A DNA stretch of 64,000 nucleotides from Styela clava (Eukaryota), in the NCBI RefSeq assembly GCF_964204865.1, contig NC_135254.1, forward strand, positions 13,454,001 to 13,518,000. Reading direction: 5' to 3'. The notes beneath the pieces are model-generated. The model was not told the DNA's origin, made no database searches, and saw only the letters and a list, made by a program, of their open reading frames with translations. A program made the translations under genes and the position numbers. Below are positions 35,598-45,466 of the stretch, one piece after another. The number at the start of each line of letters is the position of its first letter. The stretch's first letter is position 1.

Positions 35598-37349
35598 TTA
35601 CCAATGGCTCTTGTAGTTGAATTTAGCTTTGACAAGATATCTTGCTCTGATTTGAGCAACATCATAAACAATATACTCATTGTACATCAGGTATCTATTG
35701 GTATTATCAGAAACAGCTTTAGGTTTTCCTAGTGGTGCGAGAGTTCCACAATCCATAGTGTGATAGCCTTGTGGATCCGGTTCTTCGCGTCCCAATCCTT
35801 TAGTACTATGCTTTCCTTTCGGTAATTTGTTTGCATCGTAGTCTGCATGAGTTTTGTCATTTGTGTTGCCAAGAGCGACTTCGCATAGAAGTAGAAAACC
35901 AGATGGTTGACGGTGGTTTGCATGGCAGTAATTTGCAGATTTAGAAATCATGTCTGCAAAATAGACTCCTTTGCCAAACATATATCCTGTTGAAGGGGCT
36001 TCAGGTGGAGCAATTCTCAGACCTTGTTTTAATATTCCACACCAATTAGTCAAACGAGATCCATGCCACAGTAGCATTCTATTCCCGATGTCTTTCTTGA
36101 ATCTCTGCTCCTCACCCTCTCTCTCAACCTTGTATACATTTTCTAGATCAAGAGCATACTGATTATGAGTGGAACCATGTGAATTACTGACATACGTCTT
36201 TACCATTTTATATTCATCATGGGTTTTATCCAAGGGTTCAAGCTTACAGTCAAGAGATTGATAATGAAGATCTTTAATGTTAACATCATCAGTTTTATCA
36301 TCATCTTCATCCATCATTTGTATTGCAATTTGGATGTCACTAAGAGCTTCTAGTAGTTGAATCTTCAATTTCAGCTGAGCAGGAGTTCTGATCAAAGGTG
36401 GAACTTTCATGCCAAAGTCGTGAGGAATTCTTGTGTAAAATTCACTGCATGCATCAGCTAACTCACGGCCATATTTATTTTCTTGATGGCATTTTTCTAT
36501 TTTTTTCAAGGTCTCATATCCTGCTTTTATCTGCTTGCTTGTTAATTTTCCTAGTGGTGCTTTTTTGACATCAAATTCTAATTCTTTTACACAAGCTTCG
36601 AATTCTTTCACATCAAAAATAAGATCGATGACTTCTTGAAGACGCTTGTCCAATTTTGATTCAACTTCTTCTCGTTTCTTTTTCTTCTCATCATCAACTT
36701 TCTTTTTGTCATCTTTCGTGTCCTCCCCATAATCCATTTCAAGTAAATCATATTTTCCTGGTATTTTTATGAAAGAGGGTGTATTCCATATATTCCCTGT
36801 TTTGTCACGAAATTTTTTCTCAAATGTAGTCTTGGCCGCATCAAGATTACCTCCATGGCGTTTAATAGCTGTGCCAGCAATTTTTCCTACTCTACCCCAT
36901 CTAAACCATGTCACATATTGCGGTTGAGTATCTTGCTTCAGTATTTGTAAAATATAGTATTTATTGTTGTTGAAACCAATATTTGTTTGGTTCAACATTG
37001 CATTGTATATCGAATTTTGCGTTTGATCAATATAAACATGATATCCAGAGGAACATTCTGCACAATGTTCATCTACTGGAACAGACCCAGAAAATGTAAG
37101 CTTTTTTATATCTGCTTTTTCCTCTGAAGAAGATGCTTTCGAATCTGGTTCTTGTTTGACTTTTGTATTTTCCTTTTTGACCTTAACATCAGGTTTAACA
37201 GTTGCAGTATTTTTAGTCTTTTTTCCCTTACCAGCAGATTGTTTTGCATCGTCATTCGGATCATCCTTCTTGGAATTATCATCATTTTTACCTCTTTTTG
37301 GTCTAGATGAAGCTACAGCTTGTTTTGCTTGCCTTTTTCTAGGTGGCAT
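35598..37349 (-). CDS. PARP2: Poly(ADP-ribose) polymerase 2 (basic N-terminus, WGR, helical and catalytic domains), single coding exon, 583 aa
   Basis: WGR domain (MLNQTNIGFNNNKYY..WFRWGRVG), regulatory domain (KKAPLGKLT..FYTRIPHDFG) and catalytic H-Y-E triad (LLWHGSRLTNW, GKGVYFAD, YNEYIVYD). No zinc fingers or BRCT domain. The motifs read as PARP2 rather than PARP1 or PARP3. Confidence 0.93.
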   Translation of the reverse strand: MPPRKRQAKQAVASSRPKRGKNDDNSKKDDPNDDAKQSAGKGKKTKNTATVKPDVKVKKENTKVKQEPDSKASSSEEKADIKKLTFSGSVPVDEHCAECSSGYHVYIDQTQNSIYNAMLNQTNIGFNNNKYYILQILKQDTQPQYVTWFRWGRVGKIAGTAIKRHGGNLDAAKTTFEKKFRDKTGNIWNTPSFIKIPGKYDLLEMDYGEDTKDDKKKVDDEKKKKREEVESKLDKRLQEVIDLIFDVKEFEACVKELEFDVKKAPLGKLTSKQIKAGYETLKKIEKCHQENKYGRELADACSEFYTRIPHDFGMKVPPLIRTPAQLKLKIQLLEALSDIQIAIQMMDEDDDKTDDVNIKDLHYQSLDCKLEPLDKTHDEYKMVKTYVSNSHGSTHNQYALDLENVYKVEREGEEQRFKKDIGNRMLLWHGSRLTNWCGILKQGLRIAPPEAPSTGYMFGKGVYFADMISKSANYCHANHRQPSGFLLLCEVALGNTNDKTHADYDANKLPKGKHSTKGLGREEPDPQGYHTMDCGTLAPLGKPKAVSDNTNRYLMYNEYIVYDVAQIRARYLVKAKFNYKSHW

Positions 37350-38703: not shown

Positions 38704-41004
38704 TTTGAAAATGGCTACGGACGTTTCCCCGACCCTTCACCCAAAAAAAATCTGTACGAACGAAAGAAGTGGCTGAGCGACTGCATAAATTGCAATTGTT
38801 ACGTCATTGCTGATTGGTCATTGTTACGGACATTAAAATGAAATCGATGAGAAACATCCATTTAACCGTAAATATGTACTACTACAGATTTACCGACAAT
38901 ATCTCGTTTGTAAGCGAAACAACATTATTTCGTACGCTCCGATGTAAGTTTGAATATTGAATGATGGGTAGTTCTGGGTGAAACATATTAAAATTATTTG
39001 AACCTCCACTTTGTATATATTCGGTATTCCATTTGCGATGACAAATATCAGACAACAAAAATTTAGCCTCTATTCCTCCAATGCCTATGAGTTTGGAGAA
39101 GTGGTAGCTAGCTTAGTTAGTACATCTACATGCTCATTTCCAGGAATGTCCTGATGCCCGGGAATCCACCTTTTGTTTCACTGTTGCGATAATATGGGAG
39201 TATGTAGTTATGATGTTAATGACAAAGTCTTCGGATAAACATGATCGGGCCGAGTCATGTTGGTTGGGAAAAATATGCCTCATGTTGATCTTGTTATTTC
39301 TTCCCTGAAAAGAGCCAATACATTTATACACAATACCCAACTATGGCACGAATCTTATAAAGAAGTTCATCCCTCAAAACCATGTTTCGTAATAGTGATA
39401 AATAAATGAATAGACAATTATTATTATTTAATACGGAATGCATGCACAAAACCTGCTGGCCTAAAACACAAATGTGTGGCGTTATAGGGCTTGTTCGGCA
39501 ATGACTTGTATACGTCACTGTGCAAGCGGAGAATATCATCAGTAGTAGGCAATGACTAACATACCGGTAGTAGGTTACGGCACGCCTTCCACGACGAAAA
39601 AACCTGGTCATACAGATATATTTTGTTAAAAAATAGGTCGATAAGATTATGGATCTGTTGCTGGCTTATTAGATTTATGGATAGGAGTGTTTCCGGGAAG
39701 ACGGAATATCGCCAGAAAGCCATATGTTGGTAAAAGATTCAAAGGAAATTTTAGAGCATGAGGAGGAATGTGATTGGGCATTGGATATCCTATCGTCCTG
39801 GCCAGTAAAAGGTGGTTTCATGGGTTTCAAGGTTGTTTTTAACTCCGCCATAGTAAAAAGAGAGTCGAGAACTTAATCTTGTCTGGGAGATGGTTTGGCT
39901 ATTTCCTTGGTCAAATTGACTTCTTGCTATCGAGATTTAAAGTTTGTGTCATAGTTTTCCGAACTTGAAACAGCTGCAAGCGTTGTGGCAAGAACATTGA
40001 AAATATCATATTCGGTTACAAATTTCGGATGATCTAATTGCGAGCATTGTATTCCAGAATTAAATCCTAGTCTACAAAATGCCTTCACCATAGACCATAC
40101 TTGATCCAGCTTAGTGTTATTATCAACGAAGTCACAGTATTCTCTTCGAGAATCGCGTTTGGCTTTTAATATAGTTTTCCTAATATAAGATATACAACTT
40201 TTAAACTAATTTATATCTTGTATACTGATTGTTCTTCTCATCTTCAAGTAAGCTGAACGTACTGCCTTTTCGTGCAAGACTTATTCCACACAGGGACGCT
40301 ATTTTTGGTATGAGGTTGGAACACAGAGTGGACTTGGCTAATTAAACTCGAACATGTGCATGCAATTTTTTCCAATCTGCTTATTCATATTCCCATTTGG
40401 GTATGTGAACATTCGATTTGTGAGTGAATTCATTAATCCCTATACGAACCATGCAAAGTTCACTTTATAAAAAGACGTCTACAGCCGATGTTTTGCACTT
40501 TGTCAAAAAATGAAATCGTCCCGTGTGAAATCAGCATTTGGCGTAATATAAATATTGGTGAATTTGATTTTGTTAACTTAGTATAAGTTTATTTCGACTC
40601 CATAATCAGCATAACAATAAAATGATTGGTAAAAAAAATATATAAAAACTGATTATGAAATCGGGAGAGCAAACAAAACCTTAGATAAGGTTTAAAACGT
40701 ACAGAATGTATACAATATGGAAGGTTTTGCCAAGCAGAAGTGGTACGTGTTCACTCACCTAAAATAATGGAAATATTTCACACACGCACCCACACACACA
40801 ACCATACAGAAGTTATAAATTACATACGGGTAGTTAAGAAAAAATAAATAAAAATTACTTGCCACACCATATTAATAAATTTATAACGTTTGCCTTATAA
40901 CTTTTATGAAAAATATATTGCCAAGCTGATTATAGTTGGAGTCAATTGCCAAAAATGCCCAACCAAAGTTGCCAGAATTAGGTGCATGAAGAGGTGGGCT
41001 AGAT

Positions 41005-43397
41005 CAGTGATTTTCAACCGGTGTTCCGCGAGAGACCTCCAGGTGTTCCGCGAAATATTGCCTTTTCGAAGTATTATGACGTCATTCGAATAATATAAAT
41101 AGAGTCGATTTGAAAACGGCGAGTCAGAGTTTTGGAAAGTCGGTATAAACAAGAGAGCTATGCTCAAATATATGGACACGTAGAGTCACATAATTTTGAT
41201 GACGTCATAGCGAAAAAAAAAGTAATAGCCTTCTGGAGAAAATTTTTATCTTTAACCACTAAAAATTTCAAAGCAATTGGTCCAGTATTCGAAGAGAAAA
41301 GCGACTTTTTAAAAACGTGTCAAGCGGTACTCAGTTAGCAGTCAGGCAGCATCTTACCTGTACACTGTAGGCCATATACGGTAATTGATCACAGAACAGT
41401 TGTTCCCTTGCAAATTTTATGTTGTTTACACTTTAGGACAGATAATTGATCACAGAACAATTCTTCCCTTTCAAATTTTATGTTGTTTCCAGTAGACTCT
41501 CATCAAAATAAACAAATATAGTAGGCTACAAGTGCTACAACGCTTGCATTACTGCACTGGTAGGACCGTGAAAGAATAAGGTACGGTAATTTCATTGTGG
41601 TAAGACACCGGTACCGGCACCAGTACCAGTATCGTACTTACGTACTGAGCTACCAGTACCGGTTAGCAGTCAGCCAGCATCTTACCTGTACACTGTAGGC
41701 CATATACGGTAATTGATCACAGAACAGTTGTTCCCTTGCAAATTTTATGTTGTTTACACTTTAGGACAGATAATTGATCACAGAACAATTCTTCCCTTTC
41801 AAATTTTATGTTGTTTCCAGTAGACTCTCATCAAAATAAACAAATATAGTAGGCTACAAGTGCTACAACGCTTGCATTACTGCACTGGTGGGACCGTGAA
41901 AGAATAAGTTACGGTAATTTCATTGTGGTAAGACACCGGCACCAGTACCAGTATCGTACTTACGTACTGAGCTACCAGTACCGGTACCGAACCTGTAGGT
42001 CTGATATTCCGTTCCGCATACGATAGGCTATAAAACTTGCATTGCAGCATTAGTAATACCGCGGAAGGAATAAGTCAATTTCACTGCGTTACGGTACCTG
42101 TATGGCAACTTACCAGTACCGACCTACAGTAGCTGTAGTACTGAGCAAGACAATCGATCGCGAAACCGCTTGAAATAAGTGTAAAACAGTGTTCCCATGA
42201 GTAAAAATAAATACCGCGAAATTTTGTATGAAATATCATATCTCATAGGATTCATATAAAATTTAAGAATAAACAAAAGTAATAGCCTTCTAGCGAAAAA
42301 ATTAATCTTTAACCACTGAAAATTTCAAAGCAATTGGTCCAGTATTCGAAGAGAAAAGCGACTTTTTAAAAACGTGTCAAAGAACAAGAACAAGAACAAG
42401 AACAACAACAACAACATAATATTGAAACGATCGTTATGTCCACTACGTGTCCAAAAACTTGTAACCAGATAAGAAATGACAGGCCATATTCCCTTTTAAT
42501 AGATTTTTATCTCAGCGTGTATTTTTAGTGATCCATTCCATTCTTGACCAAATAATGTTTCGAAAATGTGAACATTATACTCGACCATGAATGATGTCAT
42601 CATCGGAGTTGATTACATTCGTTGCATTTCGAAGCTTTTCTTGCAGTAATAATTAGGGCGTGGCATCATCAAAATCGTCAAGTGAAGTGTTGAATTTGCA
42701 AATTCCGTAAATAACATTGTGAATTTGTAGGTAACAATTTTAGCTATGATAATGGTCGCGGTATTGTTTTGTTGGAAAAGAAGTTATACCAAAATATGAA
42801 ACTTCGATCTCCGCCGATCGGCAAGAATTAATACTTGCGCACAAGAACAAAGGCGGTAATATGAAAACGTTCAGGGGGCAAAAAAGTAGCGATTATGACG
42901 AAATTAAACAGTAAAAATCGCTTTGCTGCCAATTTTCAATGTTTTTATTAATTTCCAAATCGACCTCCGACCTTCTGGACTCCTGTTGTGTATAAAAAAA
43001 AACGCGAGAAATCGAGAGCCGTTGAGAAAGAGCTGCGTGTTTGTCTCTCCTCGATTACAGAACAAATATTTGAAATTAATCGAAACAGACCCAAATATTA
43101 CACTAAAATACCATTTCTGTTTCTAGCTACCGCAATCATAGTATTCATAAGCAAACTTGCAAAAACATATATTTGTACCTTACCGTCGCTCTTGTAGCTC
43201 TGAATCGGAATGTCTCACGTCTTTTCCTAAAGTTGACAAGCAATATTATTGATTTCGGTATTTTATTTTCATGCCAAAATTATCGACGTCCGTTAATTGC
43301 ATAATATAGTTTATTTCCAAAAATTTCGTTTGGTGTTCCGCCACAATTTCAGATTAAAAAAAGTGTTCCGCGGTACAAAAAAAGTTGAAAATCACTG
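41005..43397 (+). mobile_element. Non-autonomous hAT (Buster/Charlie-type) transposon
   Basis: TIR CAGTGATTTTCAAC / GTTGAAAATCACTG; 8-bp TSD GGCTAGAT/GGCTAGAC; subterminal GTGTTCCGC repeats; transposase C-terminal remnant (CIKK..RNR / AVEKELRVCLSSI) at about 42920-43060. Confidence 0.9.
41148..42454 (-). mobile_element. Helentron-associated non-autonomous element (HINE/DINE-1-like), copy 1
   Basis: Subterminal IR TGGACACGTAG/CTACGTGTCCA, a terminal GAGC-N3-GCTC hairpin, (AACAAG)n(AAC)n microsatellite, an internal tandem duplication of about 330 bp, and no TSD. Nested in the hAT element. Confidence 0.75.
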
Positions 43398-45466
43398 GGC
43401 TAGACCACTTCATTCCCCAAACTAGAGCCTATTATTGCAAAATTATGGTCCAGATTGTATAAGTATTTAATTAAAGGTACAAGTAATAGTATAAGTAATT
43501 ATAATTAATTAAGGTAGGACAACGGGGAATAGGAATATGTTGGTTACCAAGGTCATAAGTAAAGTTTTTTTCGATCCTAGATATTGACTTCTGCAAGGAC
43601 AAAGGAATTAGGATTGTTATTTCACAGGATCATTTCTTCATTTACTCAATGTAGGCTAATTGTTGTCAATTCAAATTTATCATAGATGAGACATCAGACT
43701 GCCAATTTTGATGATGTAGACACCCTTTATATTCAATAAGCTAGCCATTGAATTGGTCATCACCAACGACCTGAAAAACAGAAAATAAATCTGCGAGTAG
43801 AATATTCAAGGGTTACATATTAGGAAATAACACTCACTAGTCACTACCCTACACTTTTGTTGAGAAGAAATTATTATTTTGAGTAAATATTGATCATTAG
43901 TTATTTATTTTTAAAACGCAAGTTGAAAGACCTGAGTTGAATTCTGGTTGGGACACAGGGCAAATAATCTTCGCAAACCATGCAAGAACTCTCAAACCAC
44001 ACTAACCATTTGTATGTTGGCATTCACGTTAACTTCACAGCAGAACCTTCACCTAGGATAAAATTTTGTATACACACAAGACAAATCATGGAATACCACA
44101 GCAAATTAAAATGAAGGGGAGAATCCAATATATCTCGACTGGTCGCCTAATTACAGTAATAGGTACAGGGGTTAAATTATACCTTCTACAACCCTCACTA
44201 AGGAACACACCACTCAAATAGAAATAAAAGATTATGCATGTGGAATATCAGAAACCCAAAAAAAACATGCACATGCAGATATCAGAATATGAGCAGCCAT
44301 ATGCGGAAGAATCTTATGCTATGCATGCTATAGAACAAAATAAAGAGTTGGCTAGAATGCGAAACAAAACAGATGTGGAGAGCTTAGCAGCTTGTTCAAA
44401 AATAATAAGCAATTCTAGAGACAATAACAATATTATGGCTTTTATAGATTGTGGTGTTATTAACTCAATTTCGCGAATGGCGAAGGATTTTGGATACATA
44501 TTTTTACTCCGCCACTACAAACGCCCCTTCTTTCGTAATAATGTGTAACCGTACAGTGTTGGCCTATATCTGGCAATAAGATGGGGTTCTTGAAGTATAA
44601 TCGTAAATATATACTATTATAATTATTCTGTTATTCATTTTTTGTATATATCGTTCAAATTCGTATAATTTCTGGCAGATGCCTCTGCAGTTCCATTGTA
44701 ATAAAAAGCTAATTGTTTTAATATTAGTCATCATCTTCGATGAGTTAGGGCGAAAGCAACGACTAACATACCGGTACGCGAAAGTGATTGCTGCAGAGTG
44801 AAGACCATTGAACTGAAATTTCATTTACGGGTCACCGGTTATCGTTATGGGATCGAGGATAAGGGTGTTTCTTGACCTCTCCTTACCAAAATACCACTGA
44901 TTGACTGCAAGGCAATGGATTTTATTTTTCGTGAGATCCAAAACAACGCGCTGCATGAAAATGTTTAAGTAGGCAAGAGCGAGTAAGATCTAATACTTGA
45001 ATAATATATAATGTGTCAGTCACTACAGCACTAGAAGATTACTGAAGTGTATATTTCTTTCACCAAATCTCTGGTTTTGTGCCATGCTGTTCCGTAAGGC
45101 TGTACGGTACCGAACCGACAGCCGCAGTGCATCTAATGGTGCGTGATTACGATAGTCGGTAGGCCTACCGTACTTGTAAATCCAACAATTTCGGTACTTC
45201 TGAGGAAGATCAAAAGGATTATGCGTTCCGTCGGGACAATGCAACCAGTGTGTAATCGAAAGCAAAGTTATTTGTAGAGTTTTGGCCAGTTGTGTCCAAA
45301 AAATATGCACATTGATTTATAGCAGTTGAAATAATTTTTTTTGAAAACTTTGTGAATCTGTGGCATCAGCAGAACCGAAATTATGGAAATTGTCGTATAT
45401 CAAATTAAAAGCGAAGCACAAAATCGAATTCTTTTCTGAAAGTCAAATTTGGTTATTATATCAGTA

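Follow-up and report, generated by a model that had tools for sequence, protein, structure and literature searches.

Short inserts between target-site duplications in Styela clava as probable excision scars of a P-superfamily transposon family

Two short inserts in the window

The window analyzed here is a stretch of 64,000 nucleotides of the Styela clava genome (assembly GCF_964204865.1, contig NC_135254.1, positions 13,454,001 to 13,518,000, forward strand), in which two nearly identical inserts of 17 nt lie between the copies of short direct duplications. We consider both inserts very probably to be donor-site excision scars of a cut-and-paste transposon family of the P superfamily, here named P-B, whose parent copies lie outside the window. 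At site 1, the left copy of an 8-bp target-site duplication, GTAGTAGG (39542 to 39549, plus strand), is followed by an insert whose whole 17 nt read CAATGACTAACATACCG (39550 to 39566, plus strand) and by the right copy of the duplication (39567 to 39574, plus strand), with 8/8 letters identical between the two copies. The first 16 nt of the insert (39550 to 39565, plus strand) match the outermost 16 nt of the L-end, the name used here for the P-B end that lies downstream of the transposase gene, except for a C-to-T change at position 4, in a CpG. The remaining G (39566, plus strand) is A in the parent L-end and equals the last base of the other P-B end (named the R-end, ...CTG). Briefly, site 1 is a standard scar of 16 L-end letters plus G (L16+G) with a perfect duplication, plus a C-to-T change at a CpG. 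At site 2, all on the plus strand, the left duplication copy GCGAAAG (44750 to 44756, 7 bp) is followed by the canonical 17-nt scar CAACGACTAACATACCG (44757 to 44773; L16+G), a filler of four letters, GTAC, at the repair junction (44774 to 44777), and the right copy GCGAAAG (44778 to 44784). The initial annotation had described the 17-nt insert between 8-bp duplication copies at 39542 to 39574 and had taken the near-identical insert at 44757 for an independent event; sequence reading confirmed the former, and the unrelated duplications GCGAAAG and GTAGTAGG bear out the latter.

Sites 1 and 2 are the only matches to the 17-mer pattern in the window at up to three mismatches, where 0.30 are expected and 4 of 100 shuffles reach two. 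They are separated by 5.2 kb, a spacing that is not significant by itself. The T-form of the 17-mer found at site 1 is rare, with three matches, each with its own duplication, in a 56% sample of the genome. Its T at position 4 reflects a CpG-to-TpG change and does not characterize the family.

The target of site 1 is a decayed reverse-transcriptase fragment of a long interspersed nuclear element (LINE; 39440 to 39700, minus strand), and the insert sits inside its broken frame on the minus strand, in line with the interruption noted in the initial annotation. Both the 17-mer and the GTAGTAGG pair are absent from four other copies of the LINE (77-89% identical), which read GFRRGRRTIDHILRL instead, and the insert is therefore not native to the LINE. 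Contigs of two samples revealed that one allele near the sites differs by single-nucleotide polymorphisms (SNPs) and a 20-nt insertion. The contig of the second sample (run X9) carries this insertion, GTAAGAATGTTCGTTCATTC, behind 39383 together with a SNP at 39524 and keeps the site-1 scar, so the scar is older than these differences. Between both scar sites, the region from 40450 to 44300 is covered by reads and contigs to very high depth and has numerous joints (e.g. 41147 to 42453, skipping 1305), which mark nested high-copy repeats.

Scar census, target sites and the parent family

The genome of Styela clava (377 Mb; label G000, with C1, C4 and so on as contigs) was searched for the 17-mer, and the reversed 17-mer served as the control. 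The exact C-form occurs in 461 copies (229 forward and 232 reverse; control 0), and 853 matches were found at up to two mismatches (control 184). All of the 30 exact copies fetched from contig 1 are flanked by their own short direct repeats, and about nine in ten independent copies carry their own duplication of 7-9 bp, as the flank test proposed in the initial annotation had anticipated. For a scripted test, 43 stored loci yielded 34 distinct flank pairs: 15 show a perfect 8/8 duplication, 5 one mismatch and 1 two mismatches, 10 agree with a duplication once it is displaced by -1 to +4 letters, and 3 show none. Perfect duplications reach 0.09% in the control, which paired left and right flanks of different loci.

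Two of four flank subsets were tallied by eye, as were the P-A scar rows and the rows of the 13-letter search described below. The R..R subset, read completely (91/91 rows), holds 37 perfect 8-bp duplications and 16 of eight bp that start with a G shared with the last G of the insert, together with 15 duplications with one or two mismatches, 7 of seven bp, 1 of nine bp, 4 complex cases and 11 rows with none. Among the 100 rows listed of the 209 Y..Y matches, 64 belong to one repeat family, reading T-GCGGTGAC-insert-GCGGTGAC-T; the other 36 comprise 13 perfect, 5 G-sharing, 9 near, 3 seven-bp, 2 nine-bp and 1 complex duplication, and 3 rows with none. The R..Y and Y..R matches (161 by subtraction) lie outside this tally. 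The repeat family in question, TE-G (e.g. G000:C1:5396095-5396345), has 969 first-look candidates, none of them in the window. The best 40 of the 969 are 98-100% identical over 206 nt and all carry a P-B scar about 60 nt from the repeat end, with GCGGTGAC as the duplication around it. The near identity of these scar-bearing copies indicates that TE-G expanded after the scar had formed. One scar has thus been multiplied passively within a young high-copy repeat, inflating the 17-mer count, and we estimate about 330 independent exact scars after the TE-G discount, with the 161 R..Y and Y..R matches outside the reading.

Several other accounts of the 17-mer were set aside. The repeat R2 (G000:C8:23067300-23068000 and C17:13200150-13200850) has at least five copies and holds the 17-mer, as GGTACGGGTACCGC-17mer-CGCAGTTCAC, without a recognizable duplication around it. 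R2 (GGGTAYCGC-17mer-CGCAGTTCA) was ruled out as the parent, as the 17-mer sits 14 nt inside the shared repeat boundary. An apparent GTA rule for the duplications was made by a search that required GTA after the 17-mer and was gone in an unbiased search. Readings of ACTAAC/GTATGT as a splice signal, a spliced leader or a lariat were dropped given that the copies have their own duplications. A scan of 314 kb for a second abundant 17-mer scar family, by 8-mers at fixed spacing and with low power, gave only chance-level matches.

The target preference was read from 21 scars with a simple 8-bp duplication, of which 4 came from a search that biases them towards GTA. T is present at position -3 in 18/21, G at position 1 in 16/21, T at position 2 in 15/21, C at position 8 in 15/21 and A at position +3 in 11/21, giving a 14-bp palindromic span, T..GT....AC..A, with a GT....AC core. 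The same tendency towards G1, T2, A7 and C8 was seen by eye at insertions of the P-B parent. Excerpts of PMC7776569, PMC2577343 and PMC10983969, the sources of the P-type background used here, describe P elements with a 17-nt stagger and an 8-bp duplication, and a Drosophila P target motif, ATRGTCCGGACWAT, whose strongest positions are both outer ends. Judged by their letters, the duplicated sites in Styela clava are P-like in target pattern.

The parent family emerged from a search with the first 13 letters of the insert, which gave 343 matches. Among the 100 listed, 58 continue as ...ACCG, 12 as ...ACCA, and the other 30 are variants or shorter. In three of the ...ACCA rows, left flanks that differ from each other precede the common continuation ATGATGCGCA, which revealed a repeat family bounded on its left exactly by the 16-mer. 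P-B has about 20 copies of 3.6-9 kb, and its 20 L-ends each have a different flank. The R-end, ...GGCTTTCTAGGCTAGTTTCATCCCCCTG, was defined by a boundary common to four copies with different flanks, and its terminal 17-mer has 44 matches at up to two mismatches (21 exact; control 13). Three complete copies lie between perfect 8-bp duplications: C4:5432268-5435850 (3,583 bp, GTTAGGAT), C4:1884295-1891685 (about 7.4 kb, GTTGTGGT) and C6:18976653-18985801 (about 9.1 kb, GGTCAAAC); a matching duplication was not found for the fourth copy, on C3. The copies diverge from each other by 8-12%.

The copy on C6 contains an open frame of 367 aa on the strand running from the R-end to the L-end. Three Pfam domains were identified in this frame, all exceeding the curated cut-offs: TNP-like_RNaseH_N (1.7e-15, 58 bits), TNP-like_GBD (5.9e-11, 43.3 bits) and TNP-like_RNaseH_C (4.7e-6, 26.9 bits). 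Two decayed P-B copies give weak collinear matches to the same domains, and a CCVPQC-like stretch was seen in P-B by eye only. Database relatives of the C6 frame carry the same domains and include ascidians (Clavelina, Ciona); names among them include P transposase-like (Clavelina, 58% identity) and THAP9. By its 8-bp duplication, its TNP-like transposase domains and its GT....AC target motif, P-B is a P-superfamily transposon family. The genome-wide 17-mers with their duplications, the P-like targets and the domains of P-B agree with the initial annotation, which had attributed the scars to a P/THAP9-type transposon with its parent element outside the window; complete copies are located on C4 and C6.

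One-sided junctions and competing explanations

From the L-end the scars retain no more than 16 nt, or 17 in 1-3 ambiguous rows, and from the R-end 0-2 nt; the total of 17 fits a 17-nt staggered cut, but its split into 16+1 departs from the symmetric pattern. Seven rows among the matches listed have an L part of only 13-15 nt, yet the right duplication is still preceded by G or TG, as read by eye; examples with 8/8 duplications are L15+G at C4:455412 and L14+TG at C1:21201893. These same letters, G or TG, terminate the P-B R-end. Since A is present at position 17 in the parent ends and G or TG is kept in the shortened scars, the scar consists of 16 nt of the L-end and one base of, or templated by, the R-end. 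No unambiguous scar with the parental A at position 17 was seen, with 1-3 rows being ambiguous. The initial annotation had proposed that up to about 17 nt are retained from the element end, of which 16 do come from the L-end and the G at position 17 does not; it had also taken the 17-mer for a terminal inverted repeat, which it is not, as it forms one end of P-B only and the other end differs.

The contribution of the R-end is small throughout. No long R-end scar was found: the R-end 17-mer outside the parent context has two matches in a 56% sample, both of them parent ends, and the total of R-end 17-mers is about equal to the P-B copy number. The two-sided scars that the initial annotation had suggested for this family were searched for (16-mer, 0-12 letters, GTCGTTG) and gave one match, accounted for by its duplication AGTCGTTG; the second resident family P-A does have such scars. 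Joints of two L-ends were not found. Length variation, one-base losses and filler all occur at the junction beside the right duplication, while the other junction is an intact transposon-flank boundary, and the variable junction accordingly looks like a repair joint.

The following course of events would account for the scars. A P-B copy would insert at a T..GT....AC..A-type target, where the transposase makes an 8-bp staggered cut that gives rise to the 8-bp duplication. The copy would later excise and the break would be sealed by non-homologous end joining, so that the joined site would retain both copies of the duplication with at most 16 nt of the L-end between them and usually a G that derives from the last R-end base or is templated by it. 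The cleavage positions are deduced from the scars alone: as in Drosophila P, the L-end would have its non-transferred strand cut at an internal position, 16-17 nt from the terminus, leaving a 3' overhang of 16-17 nt on the donor. The R-end would keep at most 2 nt at the donor, either being cut beside the junction or having an unprotected overhang that is trimmed to its first base, and the G may be filled in opposite the first bottom-strand base of the R-end. As to the origin of this asymmetry, we tentatively infer, as a possibility with the balance rather against it, that P-B works without inverted repeats and that its ends are processed differently at excision, with an overhang of 16-17 nt at one and at most 1-2 nt at the other.

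Several observations weigh against reading the inserts as P-type excision scars. Position 17 is A in 20/20 P-B L-ends and G in the scars, and a symmetric P-type cut predicts equal numbers of scars from the R-end, of which none was seen in a 56% sample. P-B has no inverted repeats: the L-end and the reverse-complemented R-end share only CA, with a score no better than that of shuffles, whereas a typical P element has inverted repeats. The full elements expected by the initial annotation to encode a THAP-DDE P-type transposase do carry P-type domains, but a Pfam THAP domain was not detected in the P-B frames tested, whose copies are decayed and whose upstream exon may be missed. The alignment to other LINE copies suggested there likewise succeeded in part; the insert is absent from them, but a clean empty site was not obtained, the four copies compared belonging to a different subfamily with further indels at the same spot. 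Scars are also present inside P-B copies, and the P-B copies without the full internal scar still read A[T/C]ACC[A/G] there, again giving no clean empty site. Finally, no presence/absence polymorphism was seen, as reads and contigs of the two samples carry both scars.

Position 17 can also be explained by a scar made up of the full 17 nt of the L-end of an extinct P-B subfamily with G at 17, in a CpG, the survivors descending from a CpG-to-CpA variant and the R-end contributing nothing. The scar shows CpG decay at another place, position 4 of site 1, and 17 nt would equal the Drosophila stagger exactly. All 20 of the surviving L-ends have A, however, and in the seven shortened rows 3' trimming would have removed an L-derived G first, although G or TG is kept and these are the last letters of the R-end. 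We regard this explanation as unlikely. Two further accounts of the joint were rejected: cross-ligation of two identical 17-nt overhangs into a bubble predicts equal numbers of R-end scars, which were not found in a 56% sample, and microhomology predicts, in registers worked by hand, L16+TG or longer and not the common joint.

The uniformity of the insert and the large excess of about 330 independent scars over about 20 parent copies would also suit an insert that is no remnant of a larger element, either a minute mobile unit in itself or an oligonucleotide put in place by a transposase. Yet the insert is the terminal 16 nt of a real transposon, flush with its duplication, and shows length variation and filler at one junction only, as in a repair joint. 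It also lacks two ends for a transposase to pair, and P transposase is described as binding internal sites. This explanation is very improbable.

Origin from another superfamily that makes 8-bp duplications (hAT, Merlin or Zisupton) is still less credible. The hAT target pattern includes T at position 2 and A at position 7 of the 8-bp duplication, and the duplications fit it in these positions. The parent, however, encodes TNP-like RNaseH_N, GBD and RNaseH_C domains, and G1, C8 and the letters at -3 and +3 agree with the 14-bp span of P-type targets; in addition, hAT excision leaves just a few palindromic letters. That insert and duplication are native LINE sequence, or a duplication by chance or slippage, can be dismissed, since an 8-letter match to the insert start, found in this LINE at a distance of about 55 nt and shared by other copies of it, is outweighed by the four insert-free LINE copies, the duplication tally and the 461 exact copies in unrelated flanks, most with their own duplication. 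None of the outcomes named in the initial annotation as speaking against a transposon scar was encountered: the 17-mer is neither native to LINEs nor the tail of a LINE or a short interspersed nuclear element, and its genomic copies do have duplications.

For the excision scars of P-B, further features are consistent with repeated jumping and repair. At least nine pairs of scars lie less than 1 kb apart, where about 0.3 are expected for 330 scars spread evenly over 377 Mb. They are located on C1 (9277573/9277798, 12496011/12496865, 17134294/17134705 and 22565296/22565321), C3 (17843171/17843196), C4 (4419148/4419725, 5219160/5219238 and 15170196/15170538) and C13 (16290051/16290282). This clustering fits the local hopping of P elements, a behavior described for them in the source excerpts. 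The segment C3:17843162-17843221 reads duplication, inverted scar, duplication, scar, duplication, an order that fits two rounds of insertion and excision at one target. In the complex scar L087 (G000:C4:4419660-4420160), the 17-mer is followed by 22 letters that repeat the downstream flank directly and inverted, and then by the displaced duplication; to judge from its letters, this insertion looks like the templated filler of polymerase-theta-type end joining. The duplication copies differ from each other at about 4% of positions (7/168), which indicates that the events are not very recent.

Elsewhere in the window, an unbroken and apparently intronless frame of 583 aa (35598 to 37349, minus strand) resembles poly(ADP-ribose) polymerase by eye, with WGR-like and catalytic motifs.

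Resident P families and known systems

P-A, the second P family of this genome, was recognized from a decayed copy 1.7 Mb away with the inverted repeat CAAAGTGACTATAACCC... and the duplication GAGTAACT. Its terminal 17-mer has 436 matches at up to one mismatch (control 3), and the same 17 nt are found at both ends, which are true inverted repeats. About 11 copies share 96-99% identity across more than 5 kb and have open frames of 822-834 aa (e.g. G000:C13:4851100-4856100), uninterrupted after the intron that follows a THAP-like first exon; P-A looks recently active. Its scars are two-sided between 8-bp duplications, as 17+17 (GGCCTAGT on both sides), 17+11, 17+10 and 17+4. Among 50 rows of a 56% sample, read by eye, most of the readable scars are 17+4/5 or 17+11 to 15, and no more than one might be one-sided. 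These two-sided scars indicate that the 17-nt P-type stagger has left traces in this genome.

A third, decayed P family at G000:C19:3774000-3780500 has subterminal inverted repeats of about 50 nt (GCCATCTTGCTACGTGCGACT core) and a transposase that is broken up over three frames. Both families were rejected as the parent of the window scars: the intact P transposase genes of 822-834 aa belong to P-A, which has other ends, and the ends of the C19 family also differ. The transposases of P-A and of the C19 family gave nothing significant (tblastn, phmmer) against the decayed P-B copies on C3 and C4, the intact C6 frame being outside the P-A comparison.

If P-B is indeed end-asymmetric, the genome would hold a fossil record of several hundred one-sided scars, and the long P-type stagger would be a property of the end sequence and not of the transposase alone. 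The contrast between P-B and P-A makes the placement of the 17-nt cut by P transposases testable by swapping ends. With about 330 independent scars against about 20 copies in a chordate, the family also offers a natural data set on P-type insertion sites, hop distance and break repair. For annotation, the relevance is that such 25-bp events break reading frames, are copied passively inside other repeats and account for a recurrent type of micro-insertion.

P elements are known from fly genetics to leave excision footprints. Both ends of the P element reportedly contribute to the footprints in Drosophila, in work attributed to Staveley in 1995 and Gloor in 2000. The P-B scars resemble Drosophila P footprints in the duplication on both sides, the retention of up to about 17 terminal nt and the 5'-CA at the end start, and the family shares with Drosophila P a 14-bp palindromic target span with a GT....AC core and local re-insertion. 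In contrast to Drosophila P and to P-A, where both ends contribute, the P-B scars combine 16 nt of one end with 1-2 nt of the other, and unlike Drosophila P, the parent has no inverted repeats. P-type domains and 8-bp duplications are shared with the P/THAP9-like transposons of chordates (zebrafish Pdre and the Ciona P homologues), whereas Pdre differs from P-B by its inverted repeats, given as 13 bp for zebrafish P elements in the source excerpts.

P-B and P-A occur in the same genome and share the kind of target site, the 8-bp duplications and scars that keep the full overhang of one end; they differ in that P-A has identical 17-nt termini and two-sided scars, and P-B has differing ends and one-sided scars. 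Footprints of P elements, target motifs of the P type and ascidian P/THAP9 homologues were known before, and no description of one-sided P scars, or of such scars in tunicates, was found in the limited literature searched, supplements excluded. What is new here is a P family without inverted repeats, with strictly one-sided scars against those of a classical P family in the same genome, and with several hundred scars against about 20 copies.

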